A stretch of 64,000 nucleotides of DNA from Podarcis bocagei (Eukaryota). The first letter of the stretch is position 1, and each line of letters begins with the position of its first letter. The stretch lies in NCBI GenBank assembly GCA_964188305.1, contig OZ076886.1. One strand, written 5' to 3'. A model generated the notes under the pieces. The model saw only the letters and a program-made list of their open reading frames with translations, did not search any database and was not told where the DNA came from. A program made the position numbers and the translations under genes. Of this stretch, positions 166 to 50,185 are shown one piece after another.

Positions 166-402
166 CTGTTGAAGCTGCAGGTTCATCGGGGCTTCTCCCA
201 TAGTGTGCCATTAGCTTAAGTTTGGTCTCCTGCTTTTTGTGTTTCTTGCCCACGTAGTGTTGTTTTGCCATCAGGGGATTGTTGAATGTGGCATGACAGA
301 GACTGCAGAATTTGTCTGGGTCAGAAGTGTTTTGGTTCTCTTCATTAGAGGGCACAGTAGTGGGAGGCGGATTAGCTGGTTGTTTCTGAGCAGGTACAGC
401 TG
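166..402 (-). CDS. ZNF346: ZNF346 coding exon 5 (third matrin-type C2H2 finger); gene continues beyond the window start
   Basis: Acceptor ttttacag| at 404-403 and donor G|gtgag at 165. Phase 1-1, 237 nt. Encodes [79 protein letters not shown]. Confidence 0.93.
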
Positions 403-774: not shown

Positions 775-1032
<258 letters not shown>

Positions 1033-1585: not shown

Positions 1586-1681
1586 CTGCTTTGTATCCAG
1601 CTTTATTTTCTTGCTTGAGCAGACCTCCTCTTCACCATGGATAGCCATGTATCGACGAACTTTGTTGGCATGTTTCTTACT
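1586..1681 (-). CDS. ZNF346: ZNF346 coding exon 3 (end of finger 1 and linker)
   Basis: Acceptor tttccttcag| and donor CAG|gtaatg. 96 nt, phase 0-0. Encodes [32 protein letters not shown]. Confidence 0.95.
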
Positions 1682-1775
1682 CTGAAGGAAACAGTATAGA
1701 AGAGCAACATAACCATCTCAGGAATCCCACACACTCTGGGCAAATTTCAGTAACTGCCTGTAGATTTAAGCATAC

Positions 1776-1879
1776 CTGATAATGAGCGAGCTTCTGTGAC
1801 TCGGAGATGAGCACTGCACTACACACTTTACAATGGGCATCTGTGAAGATGTGGCTGTTCTCTTTGATCATACGATCCA
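1776..1879 (-). CDS. ZNF346: ZNF346 coding exon 2 (first zinc finger)
   Basis: Acceptor ctttttacag| and donor CAG|gtatgc. 104 nt, phase 1-0. Encodes (V)[34 protein letters not shown]; the [12 protein letters not shown] block is diagnostic of ZNF346/JAZ. Confidence 0.96.
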
Positions 1880-2917
1880 CTGTAAAAAGCAAGCACACCA
1901 ATATTCAAAACAAAACAAAACAAAACCAGGAAACTTTGCCAAGGACCCAGCTATCACCTCTTAGGGGTTTTGCCAGCATCACACAAATGTTCGCACCAAC
2001 ATTGAACACTGGTTAAATAAAGGTCTTGTGGCAGACAATGACAATTCTAATTCCCCAGTCGGGGAGACATAATTTAAAACATGTAAATACATTAAGGCAG
2101 GGTTTTTTTCTTATCCCACATTCAAAGAAGGGTGAAAATGCACATGAGGTGGGAATCATCTAGTAATAACACAGCAAAGAATGAGATGTCTACTATTTCT
2201 TTGATATGCTGCATAGCATACTTTCCATCAGGGATGAAGTATAGGATTGAGCGATTTCCACACTGCTACATAAAGGACAGGCTAACAATGAGGAATCATG
2301 CAAAGGTAGAAGTAACTCTACTGTTAAGTGACATGCCAGGAGTCCACTGCAGAATAAAACCATTTCCAACAACTGCAATTAATGATTTACCATGTAAATA
2401 ATGTCGTTTAAGTCAGCACAGAACACTGCACAGAAAGGCTCGATATTTCTTCCTACCATTGATCCATGCCCAATTTTAAGTACAATGCCAATGCTTTCAT
2501 TAGTCTTCAGCTAAACAGTCAATTGGCTAATGGGTCTTTCAGTTAGAGACACACAGAATGCCTGGAATTGTTTTCCATTTCCAAAGTTGCAATGCTTAGT
2601 GCCTCAACAGTGTCAAGATGATAAGTACCACTTTGTGGTCAGAAGTTTGGTCACTTTGGTGTGCATGTATGCAGGTCTCTTAGGCAATGATCTTACAAGC
2701 AAGAAGTTGCTATTTACACACTGAGTAAGAGGCAGACTGGAAATATACAAAAGTGAGGGTAGAAAACCGTCACAGCTGTGATTGATTTGTAATTGTCTTC
2801 AAAACACATCCCTTACATTCACTTTACAAACTCCTCAAAATCATTATATTGACATGACAAAGTGCATTTCAAATACTGCCATTAGGCACATCAGGGGAAG
2901 GAGATCTATTTTTGTTT

Positions 2918-3610: not shown

Positions 3611-3902
3611 TCCCAGATAAAAACACTCAATCATATATCCTCAATGATTTCCAGCCCATTCTGCATAATCATAGAGGCTGCAGCAGAGGGAGAGAAGGGA
3701 AGAATAACTATTTTACCAACTCTGCTGAGAGATCAGCTCCTTTTGTGTCTTTTAGATTGTAACTCTGAAGGCAAATACATTTTTTTTAAAAAAATACTAA
3801 TTTAGAAGTTACTTTGGGACTCTGTTTGGCTGAAGTATGTGGTGAAAATGCTTTCAATTACTAAAAAAGAAAAAAAAGAAAGGGAAAACTTGGTATCAAA
3901 TA

Positions 3903-4309
3903 CCGTATTTTTTGCACCATAGGGCGTACCGGACCATAGGGCGCACTTAGTTTTTAGACGGGGAAATCAATTAAAAAAACCTTTCCCCCCCCAGCCCCAA
4001 AAAGCAGCGTACAGGCTGCGCACAACCTCTCCCTGCCGGAGGGGTTGCGCGCGGCTATGGAACAAGCCAAGGCAGCGAGCGGGATGGATCCCGCTGGCTG
4101 CTTTGGCTTGTTCCATAGCCCCGCGTAATCCCTCCCTGCCGGGAGAGGCTGTGCAGGGCTAAAGAAGCCATAGCCCCGTGCAGCCTCTCCATGCCGGAGG
4201 GGTTGCGTGCGGCTATGGCACAAGCCTGCATTCGCTCCATAGGACGCACACACATTTCCCCTCAATTTTTGGAGGGGAAAAACTGCGTCCAATGGAGCAA
4301 AAAATACGG
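3903..4309. mobile_element. Tc1/mariner-superfamily (Tc2-like) MITE
   Basis: TIRs CCGTATTTTTTGCACCAT...ATGGAGCAAAAAATACGG flanked by TA at 3901-3902 and 4310-4311. CpG-rich interior with internal direct and inverted repeats. Confidence 0.88.
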
Positions 4310-4800
4310 TAGGCTATCCTTAGGAAGGTTAGTGACAGAAGACTTGTGGCACCTTTGCTGAATCCACAAGTGCATTTAATCTCATTATCATTATTTGCAT
4401 AGCATATACAGAACTTGAGTAAGTTTATTCCACTACCACCCCATCTCACACAGAAGTATACAACTCTTACGTCTTGAGGAACCAAGTAAAAAAAAATTAC
4501 TACTAAATTAAGGTCATTTCGAAAATAACGCTGTCTAAACTCACATATTTTATATAATCTAGGTTAATATCATTCCAACAAGCAGTTAGTCATGCTTTTA
4601 TCTTGAATTTACGTTGTAAGAAATACCTTACTTGCAGAGGCAGTCAAAAGTTAGAGTTGATTTAATAAAACAGACAACTTGTAATAGTTGACTTTCAGCA
4701 CACTATCTAGCATTACTTAAATATCCAATATTACTCTCGAAATAAAAAAAAAAAAATTGTCCAGTAGCACCTTAGAGACCAACTAAGTTTGTTCTGGGTA

Positions 4801-5018
4801 CAGTGGTACCTCGGGTTAAGTACTTAATTCATTCCGGAGGTCTGTTCTTAACCTGAAACTGTTCTTAACCTGAAGCACCACTTTAGCTAATGGGGCCTCC
4901 CGCTGCCGCCAGAGCACGATTTCTGTTCTCATCCTGAAGCAAAGTTCTTAACCCAAGGTACTATTTCTGGGTTAGCGGAGTCTGTAACCTGAAGCGTATG
5001 TAACCTGAGGTACCAGTG
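4801..5018. mobile_element. pogo/Tigger-like MITE inserted into the Penelope pseudo-LTR
   Basis: TA|CAGTGGTACCTC...GAGGTACCAGTG|TA. Same family as 27061-27286, in the opposite orientation. Confidence 0.9.
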
Positions 5019-5059
5019 TATAAGCTTTCATGTGCATGCATACTTCTTCAGATACACTG
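5014..5059 (-). ncRNA. Minimal type I hammerhead ribozyme motif (Penelope-derived), copy A
   Basis: Minus strand cagtgtat-CUGAAGA-A-gtatgcatgcacat-GAAA-GC-UU-atacactg. Core boxes are intact, stem III is the palindrome AGCU, and stem II has mismatches. Confidence 0.65.
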
Positions 5060-5228
5060 AAACAGAAGTCACCAGACCCTTATATATAGTGGGAGGGTGG
5101 GGTGGGGTTTTTCTCAGAAGGGTTGCAGGAGATGGGTGATTGACTCAATGGGTATGGTAAACCTGTTGACGACTAGTTACAGGTAGGTGTTGGTCTGCCA
5201 ACTTAGAGGCCAACTAAGTTTGTTATTG

Positions 5229-5266
5229 GTATGAGCTTTCATGTGCATGCACACTTCTTCAGATAC
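5229..5266 (-). ncRNA. Minimal type I hammerhead ribozyme motif (Penelope-derived), copy B
   Basis: Minus strand gtat-CUGAAGA-A-gtgtgcatgcacat-GAAA-GC-UC-atac. Core is intact; the stem II closing pair is G-U (likely CpG decay). Confidence 0.72.
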
Positions 5267-5889
5267 ACTGAAACAGAAGTTTACAACTGTTAACGACTGC
5301 AATTAGTCCTACAGGAAAAAGCAAGGGATAGTATGCAGATGACCAAAAATAGCTTTAGAATGTGTGATGAGACAAGAATCCAATATCTCTATTCAGACCA
5401 GGTCTCTCCATAGTTTTCAGTTTAGTAGTAAGTTGTAATTCAGTTTAGTAATGATTAAATATGACAATTGCTAACAGCACAAAGTATTTTCTGCAGCCTA
5501 GTGACATACAGTGGCTTAACAAGAAACATCAAACTTTAAACAGAACTGTACTCACTACACATTTCTACCAAAAGGTTCACAACTGGACATGGTAACAACA
5601 GAACAAAGTTAAGGGGGGGGAGAGCTTTGAGTACATTATAAACAGTAGTTTTCCTGTAACAGCTGGGCAGAGACTCCTGTTTCACCTTTTCTACAGTAAA
5701 CAAAATGCTTCTAAAAATTTTAGCAATTGTGAATGAGAGTAAGACTGCTGTCCTAAGACCACCATATTGCATTAAATATATATTTGTACAGCTATTTCGA
5801 AAGAAGCTGAATGGGGGCAGGGGGAATGCTCCAGTGAGACTTGCATTTAAGGAATTGGGTCTATAAAAATACAAAATCAGCATCAAAAG

Positions 5890-6019
5890 CAGGGATAGGG
5901 AACCTGTGGCCTTCATGATGTTGTTGGATTCCAGCTCCCATTATACCTGAACATTGGCCAAGTTGACTGGGGCTGATGGAAGTTGGAACATTTGGAAGGC
6001 CAAAGATTTTTGAGTCCTG
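5890..6019. mobile_element. Degenerate palindromic hAT-type MITE
   Basis: cagggatagggaacctgtggcc...cagctccca..tgatggaagttg...cctg resembles the MITEs at 14147, 46663 and 50027. Confidence 0.55.
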
Positions 6020-6673
6020 TCCAAGGCAGTACAGTATAACATAACAGAATAAAGTTTGCAAGCTGAATATTTGCACTGTCCATAATCTGGCAAACCTACA
6101 TGTCACTGAAAGACAATGATTCAGAAAGCACAGGGTTAGGATTTCAGTGATTAAGGGATGAGGAAACACACCCAACCCACATGTTTATCATCCCCATTCC
6201 ATATCATTCCCCCCCCCATTCTCATGCCTTCCTGTTATTTCATCAACATTTTCAATTTCTTGCAAATTGTCTAACTTTACTGTGACCACAGAACACGTAT
6301 TACACAGGTTGCAGACCAGTAGACAGTAATGCTGCAGTAAATCAAGAGTTCTCTGCAGTACTCTCGGTACTCACTCATCCTAGGTTCATCCACCCTCACC
6401 CACATCCCAACAAGAACATTTTGCTGCTGTTCATAAATTTTATTGTTCTGAACGGGAACTGCATGCACATCAATAACTGAAATGTATTGCACAGAACTTG
6501 GACACTGTAAAGTTTGTTGTTTCTTTAAGACACCACTCTGGAAGTTTAAGGAAGAAAGGAGAGTATGTATTTTCAACCCATTAGGAGGATAGAAATCTAA
6601 TCCCGTTCGTAAAAAAACAAGCCAAGGGAATTTAGGAAATCACACAGCCACACATTCACAAACCACAAACCAA

Positions 6674-6712
6674 ACTCTCGAAATAAAAATAAAAAAATTG
6701 TCCAGTAGCACC
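6674..6712 (-). repeat. Short Penelope pseudo-LTR terminal fragment
   Basis: actctcgaaataaaaa.aaaaaaattgtccagtagcacc is a near-exact copy of 4733-4771. Confidence 0.75.
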
Positions 6713-7317
6713 GTAGGGGGAGAGCTGCATATGTTCCATAATCTGTGAATGATACACTGTCCCATAAAGCAGACACGAAAGTTCACTTCCCTCATCACAC
6801 AGAAGAGCAAGGAACAAATGGCATGTAACGGGGCAGAGAAGCCAGATCTAAAGCCACTCCACTAGCAGGGGGAGGACGACACATTCTTCTACGCCCGCTC
6901 AATAAGCACTGAAGCCTTGAGGCAGCTGAAGTGATGGCTAGACCTGAATGTGTAAGATGCAAGCTTTTGTGGGACCTAGCCTACAAAATCTTACATTTTG
7001 TGAGTGTGTGTATATTAAAAACCAGGATCGATGGGAATTGGAAGCTTCAGGCTGCGAAACAAGCAGCGGAGGACTTCTTGGAGGTGGCGGAAAGAACGCA
7101 GCGTTAAAGGGACGCTCGCTCCGCCTCCGTGGGTCAAAAGAATCGGTAGCCACTGGCAGCCACACGCGGGTCGAAGTGGGGAGAAGAGAGGCCAACAGGC
7201 CCCACCCACCACGCTCCTGATGAAGCGCAGTAAAGCAGAGCCGGGCGGGGCAGAGTAAGGAGGAGGCAAACCCCCGCCTCCCTCAGAAGGAAGATGACAG
7301 AAGCGCCCCCGCCTCAC

Positions 7318-7378
7318 CTGCCTCCTTCCCCACCGGTAAGGCTGAAGCGTCCCCGTTGCTATCCGCTTCGTCCGCCAT
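7318..7378 (-). CDS. ZNF346: ZNF346 coding exon 1
   Basis: Strong start context aagATGG. Encodes MADEADSNGDASALPVGKEA plus 1 nt, with donor G|gtgagg. Phase 1 joins exon 2 (G+TG=V). PVGKEAV resembles the PVGREEV of human ZNF346 as recalled. Too short for the ORF track. Confidence 0.92.
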
Positions 7379-8269
7379 CTTATCCCCGCGTCGCCGCCCC
7401 CGAGGTACCCGCCTTCCCCCGGACGTCTCGTGGATCCCGCGAGATGCGCCTCTCTCCAAGACACGTATCGCGAGACCTCTCCCCCCCTCCCACCGCGCAG
7501 CCCGGGAACCGAAAAGATCGGGAACCGCGAGGAGAATCGAACGCCCTCGCGATATTTGGTTTGCACGTGATCGAAGCCGCCTCTCCCTGGGCGTCCATTT
7601 CTCTTGAGGGCACTGGGAGGGCCGAGCGGGAAGCAGTTGCTATGGGGATGGAACCTGGCTGCATGGCCGCTGTCGTGAGGAGGCGCCGACCTGCACGCAC
7701 CCCCCACTCCAAAAACCCCCAAAACGCCTCCAACTGCTGTGTGTGTGTGTGCCCACTCATTTCTATGATGTCTCATTCACACACCTCATTTCTGTGCACA
7801 AGAGAGTAGCAGCTCTGTTAAAACCACACACCCCTCTCTTGGGGAACATGGCAGGCTGCTAATAATTACGCTACGGCCTAATTAGGCTGCAGGACATGCG
7901 TGTTCTTAAATGGAGAGCCCCCTCGCGGAAAACCCGATTTCAATCCGGTTGGCGGGAAACAAAAGGCAGAGCCCCCAGAGAGTGACTGGAAAGGCCGCGC
8001 GTGCAGCAAACCACAGCTGAGAGTCGAGTGAAGTGACTCCTAGAAGAAGCCGAAAGGACTTCTGTGTCGGCTGGCAGCGCTGATGCTAGCCAGGACCGGG
8101 GAGAAGTAGACAGGGCTGCCCGCCTGCTTGTCCAATGCTGAGCCGCCTTCACCCAGGATGACACCGAAGGACCGGGCTGTGGGACGGCGCGAGAAGAACG
8201 GCTCCCGTGACCCCCGCAAGCCCCGCCCTTCCCCTCAAGCGAGGCCGCCGACTATTTCCATTTTAGCTC

Positions 8270-8435
8270 CGGGAAGTGAAGTTGCTGGCGCCAGCTTGAG
8301 TGCGGGCAAAATATCCGCTGCCGAGCCGCCGTCACTCCCAGCAAGGGGCAGCGGAGCCGCCGACTTGCCTCCGCCGCTGAGCTGGTGGGAGGGGAAGGCG
8401 GGGTAGTGGCCCGGTTTGGGGAGGAGCCGGCCCCG
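8270..8435 (+). other. UIMC1: Probable non-coding first exon of UIMC1 (5' end approximate)
   Basis: Lies in the CpG island just downstream of the GC-box and ETS motif, and ends at a consensus donor CCG|gtgagt (GT at 8436-8437). The first coding exon has an acceptor only 8 nt before its ATG, so an upstream exon is required. Confidence 0.65.
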
Positions 8436-9342
8436 GTGAGTAGCCTTGTCCGCCTGCCCGCCTCCCTTCCTCCGTGGGGCCCGTAGGACCTTTTCCATGC
8501 TTCCCCTGTGGGGGCTCTTCACTCCCTCTCCCCCCCCCCCCATTACAGGGTCGCCCCATGGGTCTAGCAGCCTCTTTGCAGGGAGTCTTGGTGGTTGGGT
8601 GGCGCTTCGTTGCAGCAACCTTAGTGGTCTAAACCCACCCCGTCCGTCTAAAATAGGGGAGGATTCAGTAGGACCTGGGATGGCCTGTCCTTCCACTTTT
8701 TAAACAGCCGTTTAATATGCAGAAATCGTCATGGGACGCTTTTCATGGCCTGGAGATACCTACCAAGCTGGCAGAGCTTCAGGAGCCCTTTCAAAAGTTT
8801 GCAACCTTAGAGTCAAATCTGACAAAAAGTTCGTTCTCTCTACAAAGGCCCTGCCTCTCCACAGGAGGCCTGCCTGCTCTCATTATCTTTTGCAAGTTTT
8901 TTAATGTGTCTGTTTTCAGTTTTCTTCTTCTCTGTTTAGCTTATGCACTCCTCTAGAAGTACCTTCTGCCTCAGGTTCTTGATCTTGGAGGATGCAGAAC
9001 TTTTAAAAATATTTCTTATGCCCGCTGCCTTGCAGATTGGTTGTGTTTGTACTTGATAACTGAGCATTCCTCAGAAGAGACTGTATAAAAAGAGCCCACA
9101 AACGGGGACAGGAGTGCTTAGCAGGATTTTTACTTTTTATTTTATTTTTGCAATATTTTGGAAGTCACTGTTGATAGTTATCTTTATTCAAGCTACGATA
9201 TATATTTCATAGAAATAGCATTTTCAGCTCTTGCTACCTCCATCCCTACTTTAGTGTCTCCTACAGTTTTGAGTGTTGTGTGGTCACATGATCACAGTGC
9301 CATAATTCTCCTAGGTTGAGTGCTCTCTCAGATGCAGTAAAG

Positions 9343-14275: not shown

Positions 14276-14933
14276 CTTTAGAGTGTAGGCTCCTGCCCTG
14301 GCTGCTTTTCTTTCTACTTATGCGGTAAAGCACCATTTGCATTATTGCTACATTCTCTCATATAAAAGCAATTTCCAACATTTCATTGCATTGTAGCATG
14401 ATCAGGAAATGAAAAGCAGAGCTATACAGTTTGGAATTGGTTTAATTCTTAGTGGTTCTCACTGCATTCTATGATATAGAGTTATAGGGATACATCCAGG
14501 AAGATGGTTGAGAAAAGACCAACACTTACCTGTACTGGGGTAGCTGTTTTTATGGGAGGGGACTGTCATGGTAACATCTGCATTAGATATATGGTGAGGT
14601 GCACAAAGCCCCCCTCGGCCAGTGCAGTAGGGCGTGTCATTTTAGGGGGTGAAACTTAACTTTTGCAAATTTCTTCAGTGAGGGGTCTTTAAAATATGTT
14701 TTTAATGAATTCAATTCTTCTTATTTTTTGATTGAGTAACATTTAGCTTGGTAAATTATGTTTGATTAGAAAGCACATAAACTGCTCTTGGAAAGCCAAA
14801 GAACTTTAATTTTGCCTTCCGAAAATGTCAGGAAGTGCTATAAATTTTTTTGTTTCTCTGCATAAAACATATCCTTTTAATCATACAACATTACCTTGTA
14901 ATCATAAGACAATGTTAGAAAGTAATGACATCA

Positions 14934-26920: not shown

Positions 26921-27060
26921 TTACTTCATTTTAACTTTTGCAGGATAGTCCTGAACATTCCAATTTGGGGGCAATATGAGGGTGGGGGTAATGTTTCAGC
27001 AGGGAGGTAGCTTTGTTGCTGTGTGGGAAGTCAGCCATGCTGCTTCCTTCTCACCACCTA

Positions 27061-27286
27061 CAGTGGTACCTTGGGTTACAAACGCTTCGGGTTACAAACT
27101 CCGCTAAGCAGGAAGTGGTTGCTCCAGGTTAAGAACTTTGCCCCAGGATAAGAACGGAAATCGTACAACAGCGGCACAGCGGCAGCAGGAGGCCCCATTA
27201 GTGAAAGCACGCCTCAGGTTAAGAACCGTTTCAGGTTAAGAATTGACCTCTGGAATGAAATAAGTTCTTAACTTGAGGTTCCACTG
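27061..27286. mobile_element. pogo/Tigger-like MITE
   Basis: TA|CAGTGGTACCTT...GAGGTTCCACTG|TA. Reverse-orientation relative of 4801-5018. Confidence 0.88.
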
Positions 27287-27288
27287 TA

Positions 27289-27408
27289 CAGTGGTACCTC
27301 TGGATACGAATGGGATCTGTTCCGGAGCCCCGTTTGCATCCAGAAGCAAATGCGGAGCGCAACCTGAAAGTGCTCAACCTGAAGCAACTTCAACCTGAGG
27401 TATGACTG
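27289..27408. mobile_element. Second pogo/Tigger-like MITE sharing the TA at 27287-27288
   Basis: TA|CAGTGGTACCTC...GAGGTATGACTG|TA. Confidence 0.8.
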
Positions 27409-32834: not shown

Positions 32835-32962
32835 ATGTAGTATCCGAAGAATGTAGTGTATCCGAAGAAGTGTGCATGCACACGAAAGCTCATACCAAGA
32901 ACAAACTTAGTTGGTCTCTAAGGTGCTACTGGACAATTTCTTTTTATTCTTTTTATATATTT
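32835..32962 (+). mobile_element. Penelope pseudo-LTR copy with hammerhead motif at 32858-32895
   Basis: gtat-CCGAAGA-A-gtgtgcatgcacac-GAAA-GC-UC-atac-caagaacaaacttagttggtctctaaggtgctactggacaa; reverse complement of the unit at 4757-5060. Confidence 0.85.
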
Positions 32963-32990
32963 CTACCCACAGTCACCAACAGTGTAATCT

Positions 32991-33575: not shown

Positions 33576-33681
33576 CAGTGTATCTGAAGTGTGCATGCAC
33601 ACGAAAGCTCATATCAAGAACAACTTAGTTGGTCTCTAAGGTGCTACTGGACATTTTATTTTATTTTATTTTTTATATTTC
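33576..33681 (+). mobile_element. Second Penelope pseudo-LTR copy, hammerhead core with a 3-nt deletion
   Basis: cagtgtatctgaag---tgtgcatgcacacgaaagctcatatcaagaacaacttagttggtctctaaggtgctactggaca. Confidence 0.85.
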
Positions 33682-34998
33682 TACCCACAGTCAAGTCACT
33701 GTTGTTTCCCTCTCCTACAATTTTTACTCATATACTCTCAGTCTGCATTCTGTCATTCAAGTCATAGATCTCTTGATAAGTGTACACATTCTTTACATAT
33801 AATTTTGCTACCTCTCCTTTCCTGTATGGGCTATTCCTTTTGAATAGGGTATACCTCTCAGTTTGTACATTGCAGTCATGAGTTTCATCCCACCAGGTTT
33901 CACTAATGCCTAAAAGATCATATTTGCCAACCTGTATTAAGAGTGAAAATTCTTCTTGCTTGTTTCCTGTACTCTGTGCATTAGTGTAGAGACAAGTGAA
34001 ACAATGAGTCTTTCCTCTGCACACTGCTGCCTCTGTCACCCTCAGTAGGAAATCATCTGCTGCCAGCACACATCACTTTCGTTTGTGGAGAGCAGCAGGA
34101 ATTGTTCTGTTCATTGCCACCTCAGTGTGTTTTGGGTTTTCTACTTATATTCTTGCTGCTCTGGCTGAGAATTGGTGTCCAGGGTGAGGGCATGGAATTG
34201 ATTTTGCCACTCCAGAGACAAAACATGGCTCCTGACAGTCCTGCTTTCTTTGTGTTATGTTCCTTCAGGGGGTTGCCTCCTGTATTGGGTGATCTTGCTC
34301 CTCCCTAGGGTTCCCTTCCTGCATCTCTGCTCCAAGATAGTCCACTCGGGTCTAGTGAGAATTTCCTCATCTTGCCTGATAGCTCAGAGTGTGGTTGGCA
34401 GGCCTCATGTTGCTGTATCTTCTCTTCCAGCAAGGTAATCAGCTTGCACTTGCTACATGTGTAGTTTTGCCCGTTCTTAGGCAGGAAGACAAACATGGCA
34501 CAGATGTTGCTGGTAATTGCAGCAGCTGCATTACCCTCCAGGTCTCTTGGTTCCCCACACACTGTGAGACAGCTCCAGGCTTCCCCCTCAAACTAAACAA
34601 CCTTGCAAATGCCCCTGTTTACAAGTCCTGGCCATGAGAGCTTCACCTGCTGGATTTCCTCCTGTAGTGCTTGTATTAAAAATACAGCAGCCCTGTCTTG
34701 TTGCAGGTGGCGCTGTCGCCATGTTTGAAACCGCCTGCGTTTGAAGCATCTGCTGCGCCAAGATGGTGAGGCCCGTGAGGCCCAGCGCTTGAAGAGGCGG
34801 TGGGCAGGGAAGCCACAGAGATGAGTTTTGCCAGATGCTGAGAGGGGAACACGACTGCCTGAGGAGTTCCAGGCAATTTTCATCCCCCCACCTCCCCACT
34901 TTTTCTTGCTTGTATTCTTACTTGCCTTAAGACTGCCTTCTCAGCAATGCCACTGCCTCAACCTTTTCAGACAGATAGCCGAGTTAGTCTTTTGCATC

Positions 34999-43352: not shown

Positions 43353-44486
43353 AGCTGCCAGCCTTCTGAGTCTTCGGCTGCAGCTGCCGTGCCCCATCCT
43401 TCCAAGGCACCAGTGTCTTCAGCACCAAGCTACCCAGCTGGGCAAGAGGATCCTGAGCTCCTTGCAGCTCTACTGCCTTGCCCTGAGTCTCCTTGCTCCG
43501 AGTACAGCTCCCTCTCACACAGTGACAAAACTGATAAGAATGGACAGACAGATGTCGCCAAGAGGCCCCTAGTAGTACTGACGAGGTTAAGCCAGGCAAC
43601 AGTTGAGAGCTCACTAGTCTCTAGCATAATTGTATCTCCAGGGAAGAGCCAACCTTCTGCAAGGTCAAATGAAAACCCTTCCCCATCAGCAAGGAGCAGT
43701 TCCAGCGATACACCACCCAGTCTAGAAGAAGGGACATCAGTTGCCTTAAGTCCCACCTTTCCCCAAAGGCCTCGGGGCACTTTGTCACTGGCATCTCAGA
43801 GACTTTTTGCAGGACGGTTTAGCCCTCCAAAGCCAACAGGCAAGGAAACTGAAAAGCATTCCCAAAATTACATGGAAGGAGATTCCCTTCCTGGTTGCTC
43901 AGAAGCTCCGGAGAAAGTGGCCCTAGAGCAAAGCATGTTGGACTACTCCAGCAGACCAGGGTCTGAACTTGGACATCGGTTGGAGCCCATCAAGAAGGCA
44001 TGTCTTTCTCCTGGGCTGGTGGAAAGGACTGAATTGCCCAGAAATGCTCCTCCACTGTGCGCACTTCATAGGGGTGACGAGGAGTGCCAAGAAGGCGAAG
44101 AGAGAGACATGGTGCACTATTACTGGGGTGTTCCCTTCTGCCCTAAAGGCGTGGATCCCAACAAATATACCCAAGTCATCCTGTGTCAGCTTGAGGTTTA
44201 CCAGAAAAGCCTGAAACAGGCTCAGCGACAGCTTCTACACAAGAAACCATTTGGGGAGCCCATTGTCCCCAATTTGTGTCCCTTGAGGCGAAGTGACCGT
44301 GGCAAAGCAGCAAAGGAAGCATCTAAGATAGATGAAGGTACAGATGAGCAGGAAGGAGAAGAAATGGATGAGAAAAAGGAGCCTGAGAGCATAGCCTGGC
44401 TTCTGTCCCCAATAAATGGAGAGCAGAACATGGCAGGGGGAAGAAACCCTGAGCGTGATGATGAGCCAGCAAGCAGCTCATTTCAG
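43353..44486 (+). CDS. UIMC1: UIMC1 large coding exon 4 (Ser/Pro-rich region and Abraxas-interacting region)
   Basis: Acceptor cctttctag|AGC, uninterrupted 378-codon frame, donor CAG|gtaaat. Contains VHYYWGVPFCPKGVDPNKYTQVILCQLEVYQKSLKQAQRQLLHKKPFGEP. Confidence 0.9.
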
Positions 44487-46624
44487 GTAAATTTGCTGCG
44501 CTTTCTTTGTCGGTCTGGTGAATTCTGAATGAAGGAGGGGGAGTGGCTAGTTATCTTTGCTTGATGTTGTGATCTATACAACAGACTAGACCCCAAAGAA
44601 TGTTGGTGCGTATTTAGGGGTACATTGGTTCACTACGACTTGCCACACTTCTAAGGTCAAAGAGATTTGGTGAACTTTGCAGCTTTTTAAAAGAATAGTG
44701 GACAACTCAGAAATTTATAGGATCTAGCATTATAGTGAACTGAATCTCTAGTAGGTGGCTGTTCAAGCAAGGGGGGAGAAACTTTTCAGCCCCAAGCTAA
44801 CCTTGTGGCTTAACCTTCTGGGGGCCACATGCTAGCTGTGTGCAGGGCCAAAGCAAAAAGTGGGTATACACACACTCCTTTACATGAACACAAACACTTC
44901 CATGCGCTCTCCCTAGCTTCAGTCTCCAGGAACTTGCCCTCTCCTCCCAGAGTGGCAGTCAGGCTTGAAAAAAAGCATTGGAGCTAATGGAAGTCATTTT
45001 TTCAAGCCTAATTGTCACTTGGGGAATATTGGGGGCATGGAGCATGTTATAGTCAGATGAGGAGGACTCATGGGCTGCGTCTGAGCCGGTGGGCTTGAGG
45101 TTCCCCATCACTGAGATAGCTTGTTTCTGCCAAGAGATTAAATAATAGACTTGAAACCCAGTTTGTGCTCTCTGGTTTCTAAATTGTAACAAATGTGACT
45201 TTCCTTTGCAAGATCAATCTTAGAAAGCATATATCAATGTATCTTACCGCCAAAATGTTCAGCTCTTGATGGTTATGTTAATAGCTACGAAGGCAACCAT
45301 ATGACTGAAAATTGTGGCTTATACACAAAGAGTTCTAGTATAGCAAGTCATCTATTGCTGGCATGAGCATTGCTGCATTTTTAAAAAAAATTGTTTGTTT
45401 TGCTTGGCCTGTTCTCTGCCTTACTAGGTAAATCCATATGCTACCAGAGATAGTAAAATGCCATGTGACCTAGTTCTAAAATACATTTTCAGCAGGAAAA
45501 CATTTGCTATTTTGCACTGAGTTTTTTACATTATTTTGCTCTTTGGGAGATGTACCATTCATAAGACTATGCAGTCTCTTAGGATTTCTCTGTGTTTCTT
45601 AGCCAGTTGCACAACTTAGGTTTTAAGGGCGCCTAAGCAGCAGTGATTGATTTTAATGGGCAAGCTTTCCTATGTGTTTATCATGTCACTGAACAGAGGA
45701 TGAGATGTGACAGGGAGAATGTTATAATCCTTCCTCATTGGTGTGGCATGCGCAGCCAAGCCAAACATTAACCTGTTCCTCTTGCTTTAATTGTTGTCTC
45801 TGTGTGCCATTTTTTCAAGCTGCCGGACAGCCACTAGGTGTCAGTGTTTGTTTCATTTCAAGAGCTGGAAGCAGCTTTCGGTCATTGCTGCTGTTTAAAC
45901 AGATTGCTAGTCAGATGAAGTATTTATTGCTGCTGTATTTTAGGTTTGTGTCAGCCTTTTCCAACCCTCATTTTTCATAATGACTTCGCTGCTAGATCAT
46001 TGTATAACTTTATCTTCGCTCTGACTGAAGCTCAACCTTGTTGTTACTATTTTCAAGTGTATTTGATTGTTTACCCCAGTGATGGAAAGATACTTAACTT
46101 GTTTTGTGATATTTATATTCTGTCTTGTAATATTGAACGCGCTGAGGAAAAACTGTCATGTCTGCATTTTCTTTCAGAAGCAAAAGTGCAGTGCAGCCTT
46201 GCTTCTGGTTTCACAGTTTTGGATCCAGAGTAGCTATATTTAAACACACCTTAAAGGTGACCTGCGAAGGAGAAAATGTTGGACTTGTGCCCTATTTTTG
46301 CTCGTTTATGATAGATGGAGATGACCGAGATGACCGAGTGTTTTTGTGTCAAAGCTGTTTTTATCTCTCTGCCTCAGTTGTTGGAAATCCAGGCCTTATT
46401 TAGCCTGGATTTTTGTGTGTGTGTGTGGCATGTGAAGTTCTGATGAAAATCTAGGAAAACCCCAAAGGCCTGATAGCACTGGTAGCCAAGAAAGGGAATT
46501 AATAATATAGGAAGCTGTCAAATGGGAGACTGTGATGAGCTGATACATCTAAGCACAGAAGTTAGATATACCCCAGCTTCTTCAAAGCCATTCTTAGGAA
46601 CACGGGGAGACTCTTTATACAGAG

Positions 46625-49888: not shown

Positions 49889-50185
49889 GGGGAAGGACTG
49901 TAGCTCAGTTGTAGAGCATCTGCTTTTAAGGCAGAAGCTCTTTGGTTTAATCTCCAGCATCTCCAGACAGGGTTGGCAGGGATTTTTGTCTGAAACCCTG
50001 AAGAGCTGCTGCCTGTCAATGTAGACCAGCCATAGGCAAACTTGGCCCTCCAGATGTTTTGGGACTACAACTCCCATCATCCCTGACCATTGGTCCAGTT
50101 AGCTAGGGATGATGGGAGTTGTAGTCCCGAACATCTGGAGGGCTGAGTTTGCCTATGCCTGATGTAGACCATACTGAGCTAACTA
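49889..50185 (+). mobile_element. tRNA-derived squamate-type SINE interrupted by a hAT MITE
   Basis: ggggaaggactgtagctcagttgtagagcatc (A-box)...ggtttaatctccagcatctcc...tctgaaaccctgaagagctgctgcc.gtcaatgtagac|MITE|catactgagcta. Confidence 0.82.
50027..50161. mobile_element. hAT palindromic MITE
   Basis: TIRs CAGCCATAGGCAAACT/AGTTTGCCTATGCCTG, perfect 8-bp TSD atgtagac (50019-50026, 50162-50169), near-perfect internal hairpin. Confidence 0.92.

Follow-up and report, generated by a model that had tools for sequence, protein, structure and literature searches.

In the minimal hammerhead ribozymes of metazoan Penelope-like elements (PLEs), one base is left unpaired between positions 9 and 10.1, helix I is short, helix II is long and the sequence at 15.2-16.2 is palindromic (Cervera & de la Pena 2014, PMC4209133). 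Their G10.1-C11.1 pair is highly conserved, and the copies, which are known from reptiles, are mostly solo, truncated and widespread (PMC4209133). A lizard element has been described in PAc, a Poseidon-clade PLE of Anolis carolinensis, where the open reading frame starts inside the hammerhead and where partial tandems and insertions into the element's own pLTR occur (Frangieh et al. 2024, PMC11167929). In general, PLEs tend to insert into or beside older PLE copies (PMC6765202; also PMC11167929). Minimal motifs without stem-loop III were published by means of purpose-built descriptors and manual inspection.

HH9 and HH10, the intronic hammerheads of amniotes, each occur as one ultraconserved motif, which folds and cleaves as a monomer. 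The two motifs described here are like them in being of type I and in lying, as far as the exon positions tell, on the sense strand of an intron of a vertebrate gene. They are unlike HH9 and HH10 in that they belong to a multi-copy repeat, have no stem-loop III and are decayed, and the window matches neither Rfam model (E<=10).

The window, a stretch of 64,000 nucleotides from Podarcis bocagei (contig OZ076886.1) that contains no N, carries on its minus strand two minimal type-I hammerhead cores spaced by 211 nt. The coordinates, strand and spacing had been given correctly in the initial annotation. The order of the core is CUGAAGA, stem II and GAAAGCU in both, followed by C in copy 1 and by U in copy 2. 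From 5270 to 5225, the minus strand of copy 1 reads ...CAGUGUAU-CUGAAGA-A-GUGUGCAUGCACAU-GAAA-GCU-C-AUACC..., and this stretch is nearly repeated 211 nt downstream (5059->5014). A 52-nt direct repeat of 96% identity (5280-5229 and 5069-5018) houses both motifs, which are composed of the following parts.

5229..5280, minus strand: hammerhead copy 1, in the 52-nt repeat (motif pattern, repeat search)
5266->5263, minus strand: copy 1, helix I 5' strand GUAU
5262->5256, minus strand: copy 1, CUGAAGA
5255, minus strand: copy 1, unpaired A
5254->5241, minus strand: copy 1, stem II of 5 bp with the loop CAUG; G10.1.U11.1 at 5254/5241
5240->5234, minus strand: copy 1, GAAAGCU, with GAAA at 5240->5237
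5237->5234, minus strand: copy 1, AGCU palindrome
5233, minus strand: copy 1, C17; predicted cut 5233/5232
5232->5229, minus strand: copy 1, helix I 3' strand AUAC
5018..5069, minus strand: hammerhead copy 2, in the 52-nt repeat (motif pattern, repeat search)
5051->5045, minus strand: copy 2, CUGAAGA
5044, minus strand: copy 2, unpaired A
5043->5030, minus strand: copy 2, stem II with an A.C mismatch at 5041 and G.U at 5043/5030
5029->5023, minus strand: copy 2, GAAAGCU, with AGCU at 5026-5023
5022, minus strand: copy 2, U17; predicted cut 5022/5021
5021->5019, minus strand: copy 2, A-U-A past the cut, with a transposon next

The catalytic boxes CUGANGA, GAAA and U-H were present in type-I order in both copies, and both have an unpaired A (5255 and 5044) separating position 9 from 10.1. 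Positions 15.2-16.2 are palindromic in both (AGCU, 5237-5234 and 5026-5023), as had been annotated for stem III, and a hairpin of AGCU within a monomer is impossible, as it would have a 2-nt loop. Copy 1 has a helix I of 4 bp (GUAU/AUAC) and a helix II of 5 bp with a 4-nt loop. In copy 2, helix II is broken by the A.C mismatch, and helix I had originally 4 bp and has 8 bp with the end of the transposon. The conserved G10.1-C11.1 pair is absent and replaced by G.U in both copies (5254/5241 and 5043/5030), which agrees with the G-U noted earlier at the base of stem II.

The boxes, the unpaired base, the 4-bp helix I, the longer helix II and the AGCU in place of stem-loop III, which implies action as a dimer, are shared with the metazoan PLE hammerheads, whereas U11.1, the stem II mismatch of copy 2 and the absence of an adjacent PLE reading frame distinguish the two copies from them (PMC4209133). 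The Penelope origin proposed in the initial annotation is borne out by this match to the published architecture. The comparison supports a classification of both as Penelope-type minimal type-I hammerheads in which a palindromic AGCU replaces stem-loop III, and they are derived members of this family that fail one conserved feature (C11.1). In the proposed Infernal search, the Rfam hammerhead models (type I, II, III, HH9 and HH10) gave zero matches in the window, at the gathering score as well as at E<=10, and by model score the motifs are outside every Rfam hammerhead family. A reading frame for a PLE reverse transcriptase or endonuclease was not found in the window, and the motifs are flanked by family sequence of high copy number, with a PLE-like tail next to T-rich DNA. 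The tie of the family to an autonomous PLE therefore rests on the motif architecture and the tail signature.

As in PAc, an ATG is found within the hammerhead stem-loop II, here in loop II (5248-5246 and 5037-5035), and a short 'tail', ending a few dozen nt beyond the hammerhead and beside AT- or T-rich DNA, closes the insertions (PMC11167929). Start codon and cut site are 16 nt apart in the ZNF346 copies and 26 in PAc, and the tail ends at about +61 at the ZNF346 locus and at +111-118 in PAc. Since these distances differ, the family at the ZNF346 locus is distinct from PAc, as compared by layout and not by sequence.

The host gene was identified by three minus-strand stop-free stretches that encode JAZ-type zinc fingers and follow each other in descending coordinate order.

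1680..1904, minus strand: ZNF346 exon with zinc finger 1, stop-free stretch (Xenopus ZFa residues 19-55, PDB 1ZU1, E 1.6e-13)
904-972, minus strand: zinc-finger exon (ZFa residues 85-127, E 1.9e-20)
239-307, minus strand: zinc-finger exon (human ZNF346, E 1.4e-25)

On the gene strand, the exon with zinc finger 1 is downstream of the motif pair, and the sole nearby CpG island is at 7000-8500. The motifs are situated between this island and the zinc finger 1 exon (ZFa residues 19-55). Judged by the zinc-finger exons, they occupy the sense strand of ZNF346 (minus). Since the site is between the likely promoter and exon 1 (the CpG island) and an exon that starts near residue 19, it is most likely in intron 1. 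The placement in ZNF346 intron 1 that had been annotated thus stood for the sense strand, and its intron number fits.

Elsewhere in the window, the longest open reading frame (43389-44528, plus strand) has 379 aa. The sole Rfam match over the gathering score is a weak tRNA-like one at 49894-49965 on the plus strand (30.7 bits, threshold 29) with several non-standard pairs, probably a SINE or a tRNA-derived relic.

For the architecture of the locus, DNA contigs from two sets, X1 of the source species and X4 of a sister species, were aligned to 3800-6800 at 90% likeness. In the unique flanks, the sister species diverges from the window by 1.2-1.4% (7/486 and 6/512 letters differ). The elements at the locus and the other copies of the family in the window are listed below.

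5287..5430, minus strand: family sequence upstream of the extra piece, forming the 5' end of the outer PLE fragment; joins 5171 elsewhere
5175..5286, minus strand: locus-specific extra piece carrying copy 1, bracketed by a 12-14-nt direct repeat
5070..5174, minus strand: family sequence (pLTR-like) immediately upstream of copy 2, with TATATATAAGG at 5088->5078
4801..5018, no strand assigned: Tc1/mariner-like miniature transposon of 218 bp with 25-nt terminal inverted repeats CAGTGGTACC...
4758..4798, minus strand: continuation of the copy-2 element past the transposon, CCAGAACAAACUUAGUUGGUCUCUAAGGUGCUACUGGACAA (direct repeat); 3' end ('tail') that abuts a T-run
6716-6681, minus strand: tail-only fragment (repeat search)
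32855..32948, plus strand: solo hammerhead and tail copy with C at 11.1 and the core lesion U4->C (CCGAAGA)
33576..33671, plus strand: solo hammerhead and tail copy with C at 11.1 and a 3-nt deletion at the CUGAAGA/stem II junction

The piece with copy 1 is bracketed by AGTCGTTAACAG (5298-5287) and AGTCGTCAACAG (5174-5163). Joints that skip 114 nt (5171->5286 and 5168->5283) were observed in 15+6 contigs of the source species, in 6+2 contigs of the sister species and in 14 RNA reads. Because family contigs and reads skip over these 114 nt, the copy-1 piece 5286->5175 is extra at this locus. Between the piece and copy 2, the sequence at 5070..5174 has no open reading frame, with stops in all frames, and a depth about 3,000-fold over the flanks. 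Upstream of the piece, family contigs cover 5284-5399 and 5286-5427, and single-copy contigs start near 5399-5414. In the sister species, the single-copy contigs are interrupted at these repeat borders too (4766 and 5414), which suggests that the insertions predate the split of the two species.

The 218-bp transposon (5018->4801) begins 3 nt beyond the cut site of copy 2 and is flanked by a TA duplication (5020-5019 and 4800-4799). Family copies without the transposon exist, as a joint 4797->5018 was found in reads and contigs. The terminal CACUG of the transposon complements a CAGUG upstream of the copy 2 core (5018-5059), and this chance pairing extends the 4-bp helix I of copy 2 to 8 bp. 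The transposon itself is the deepest sequence of the stretch (8-9 million in the sister species against about 16.6 for single-copy sequence), with thousands of RNA reads in both directions, and a second copy of it is present at about 27059-27289.

Past the transposon, the copy-2 element runs for another 41 nt to ...GGUGCUACUGGACAA and a T-run. This tail end recurs in three other copies (32922-32935, 33640-33653 and 6712-6699), and a tail at T-rich DNA in four copies fits the PAc-type PLE tail and AT-rich target (PMC11167929). Beyond the tail end ...GGACAA, a T-run and ATTTCGAGAG are found at both 4732-4757 and 6681-6698, and the two plus-strand copies have TTTATATTTCTACCCACAGTCA in common past their tails (32940-32975 and 33655-33695). 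Two 3' variants may exist in the hammerhead family, or it may prefer certain targets.

For the abundance of the family, the summed depth in the sister species, which is not a copy number, was 778,812 and 301,246 in the hammerhead bins, 54,605 between them and about 16.6 on the unique flanks. The PLE hammerhead repeat family is clearly very abundant, with a depth thousands-fold over the single-copy flanks. Another very high-copy repeat is the block at 3900-4310 (depth 810,225 in the sister-species bin 4204-4304), which consists of GC-rich nested inverted repeats with 48-nt arms that are 90% complementary (4038-4135).

The lesions of the two motifs were then compared with the family. At 5241, where copy 1 has its position 11.1, 84% of the depth in the sister species and 77% in the source species carry the base for C11.1, and so do 185/197 and 223/241 of the reads in the RNA run X23. 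Both copies have U at 11.1, where C prevails among the family copies as read at 5241. At 5041, the third pair of stem II in copy 2, the pairing base accounts for 54% of the DNA depth in the sister species, for 45% in the source species and for 86/87 of the X23 RNA reads. Each of the four hammerhead copies in the window bears a different lesion, as would be expected if the four had decayed neutrally. At 11.1, the T forms TG where the other copies show CG, which fits a decay of CpG; the shared U could also be a subfamily trait instead of decay. A 19-nt match at 14516-14534 was judged to be chance.

The possibility that the motifs are chance matches unrelated to hammerheads was weighed together with two readings that grant them an activity. 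The short pattern and the absence of an Rfam match would favour chance. The pattern CTGANGA-N(8-30)-GAAAGCT matches exactly twice in the 64 kb, with a shuffled expectation of 0.12 per window, and at least two matches were obtained in 1/100 shuffled windows, although the two matches are copies of one repeat and count as one event statistically. The stronger argument against chance, outweighing the shuffle statistics, is the homology to a high-copy repeat family whose members have all the features of PLE minimal hammerheads that were not part of the descriptor. Chance is already refuted by this family evidence, and its probability is practically nil. According to the initial annotation, the two copies might pair by AGCU to an intramolecular double hammerhead that cuts the nascent ZNF346 transcript, which would attenuate the gene or release a 211-nt RNA. 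This finds some backing in the intact catalytic boxes of both copies, their sense orientation 211 nt apart and the 8-bp helix I that the transposon end fortuitously supplies to copy 2; a second copy is also reportedly required for PLE-type activity (PMC4209133; PMC6765202 citing Lunse et al.). The energies of the parts were calculated with ViennaRNA, where the dimer of a double hammerhead is a kissing (pseudoknot-type) interaction, and as equilibrium predictions they cannot decide on activity. The trans helix III between the two AGCU has merely 4 bp and -2.5 kcal/mol. For the stem II hairpin, -5.5 kcal/mol was predicted with C11.1, -3.3 for copy 1 and 0.0 for copy 2, where the A·C mismatch abolishes the hairpin and stem II is unfolded. 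Copy 1 alone reached -5.3 kcal/mol with helices I and II, compared to -6.3 for its minimum free energy fold. In two-strand cofolding, the palindromic stem II sequences preferred to pair in a swapped duplex (about -31 kcal/mol). The equilibrium fold predicted for a 371-nt RNA was also swapped, with the 5' half of copy 1 paired to the 3' half of copy 2 and the local helices I and II at probability 0.00. This fold would speak against a double hammerhead, but co-transcriptional folding favours local hairpins and the fold was therefore counted for neither side. The comparison of monomer and dimer folding that had been proposed thus ended with an unfolded stem II in copy 2 and a preference for swapped pairing, and the equilibrium folds lend no support to an intramolecular double hammerhead. 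The U at 11.1 in both copies and the interruption of copy 2 by the transposon 3 nt beyond its cut site argue in the same direction. Even dimeric, the minimal PLE hammerheads have a low activity (PMC4209133), and the anole PLE hammerhead needs the PLE protein and shows no RNA-seq read ends at the site (PMC11167929). For the source species, none of the runs on record was RNA, and two bulk RNA-seq runs of the sister species were used, of which about 12% each was read. Not a single read fell on the unique flanks within the intron (4406-4708 and 5517-5819), which makes these runs powerless at the ZNF346 locus itself, and the RNA reads on the motifs, which run in both directions, therefore all come from other family copies. 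Among these family-wide reads, no pile-up of read starts or ends was observed anywhere, including both motifs. Loose ends at 5020/5021 and 4798-4800 are borders of the transposon, with heterogeneous continuations (agreement 0.34-0.53), and, lying 1-2 nt from the predicted cut of copy 2, they would confound a mapping of RNA ends. Finally, given the abundance of the family, one intronic copy on the sense strand is unremarkable. The attenuator or RNA release is therefore left unsupported by the lesions, the unfolded stem II and the interruption by the transposon; we regard an AGCU-paired double hammerhead that cuts the transcript as highly improbable, any remaining cleavage of ZNF346 pre-mRNA by the motifs as extremely improbable and the locus as a poor candidate for testing the cleavage of a host pre-mRNA. 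In a variant that tolerates the lesions, a double hammerhead would cleave a fraction of the nascent ZNF346 pre-mRNA in cells with a PLE protein or an RNA chaperone and so act as an attenuator of the host gene, for which the 8-bp helix I of copy 2 or the swapped pairing of the two copies could be of aid. This is a most distant prospect; if true, cleavage of a host pre-mRNA by a relic would be a new mode of gene tuning by retroelements. The RNA data also contained 85 X23 reads at 5921-6021, all in a single direction and with three linked differences (5961, 5963 and 5966), which points to a paralogous copy of a repeat that is expressed from another place in the genome.

The locus could also be a non-LTR retrozyme of 211 nt in dimeric form; such a non-autonomous derivative of a PLE would be transcribed, cleave itself and circularise. 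In animals, non-LTR retrozymes consist of tandemly repeated units with type-I hammerheads, dimers among them, and the ZNF346 locus is like them in its pair of type-I hammerheads about 200 nt apart on the same strand (Cervera & de la Pena 2020, PMC7229834). It is also PLE-related, as are the retrozymes, which derive from PLE pLTRs, and its size is within the range for reptiles, where consensus lengths average 176 bp (Li, Clavereau & Pollet 2026, bioRxiv 10.64898/2026.07.22.740005). RNA reads of family members were found in both RNA runs, which likewise favours a retrozyme. Unlike in retrozymes, no tandem of one unit was found: the two 'units' have just 52 nt and about 30 nt in common, Tandem Repeats Finder detected no period of 211 nt, and the sequence upstream of copy 1, aligned globally with that between the copies, showed no convincing homology beyond the 52-nt and the 12-14-nt AGTCGTYAACAG repeats. 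Nor is 211 nt a period of the family, whose contigs and reads bypass the copy-1 piece. A circular-type joint 5022-5232 was absent among the joints listed, which is a weak argument. Because of the missing period, the few shared nucleotides and the skipped copy-1 piece, the pair is no tandem unit of the retrozyme type. The locus fails the definition of a non-LTR retrozyme, which is a head-to-tail unit of 150-450 nt, each with a type-I hammerhead, and a retrozyme dimer is very unlikely. The spacing of 211 nt is a locus-specific accident of nesting and no repeat unit.

The pair is very probably a neutral relic of PLE insertions in ZNF346 intron 1; its anatomy, lesions, strand and membership in the family are shown by the data. 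For the order of events, we infer the following. An outer, 5'-truncated PLE fragment (5430->4758, minus strand) would have brought the pLTR-like sequence, copy 2 and a 61-nt tail to a T-rich target. Within its pLTR, a second and much shorter PLE piece (5286->5175) would have brought copy 1, either by a nested insertion (5'-truncated, with a 12-14-bp target duplication) or by a template switch during reverse transcription. The Tc1/mariner-type miniature transposon would have arrived later, 3 nt beyond the cut of copy 2. In the parent element, the hammerhead would overlap the start of the open reading frame and belong to the element's own RNA biology, where it presumably acts as a dimer in the processing of PLE transcripts, assisted by the PLE protein. 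Drift since then would account for the wobble pair at 10.1/11.1 in both copies and for the broken stem II in copy 2.

A G.U at 10.1/11.1 would weaken the activity, as judged from the conservation of the pair and general knowledge, and no published effect size for it was found in the literature. The catalytic boxes are intact and G10.1 is retained in both copies, and the G.U pair may still permit some cleavage. Taken together, we infer that the neutral relic most likely does nothing to the ZNF346 pre-mRNA.

The finding is an ordinary, already known kind of repeat relic, and this instance of it is decayed. As one more decayed Penelope hammerhead copy in a lizard genome that holds very many, it is of little weight. 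It serves as a worked example in three respects: Rfam models are blind to such minimal motifs, repeat boundaries can imitate ribozyme cut sites in maps of read ends, and nesting, not a retrozyme unit, can create a 'tandem pair'.
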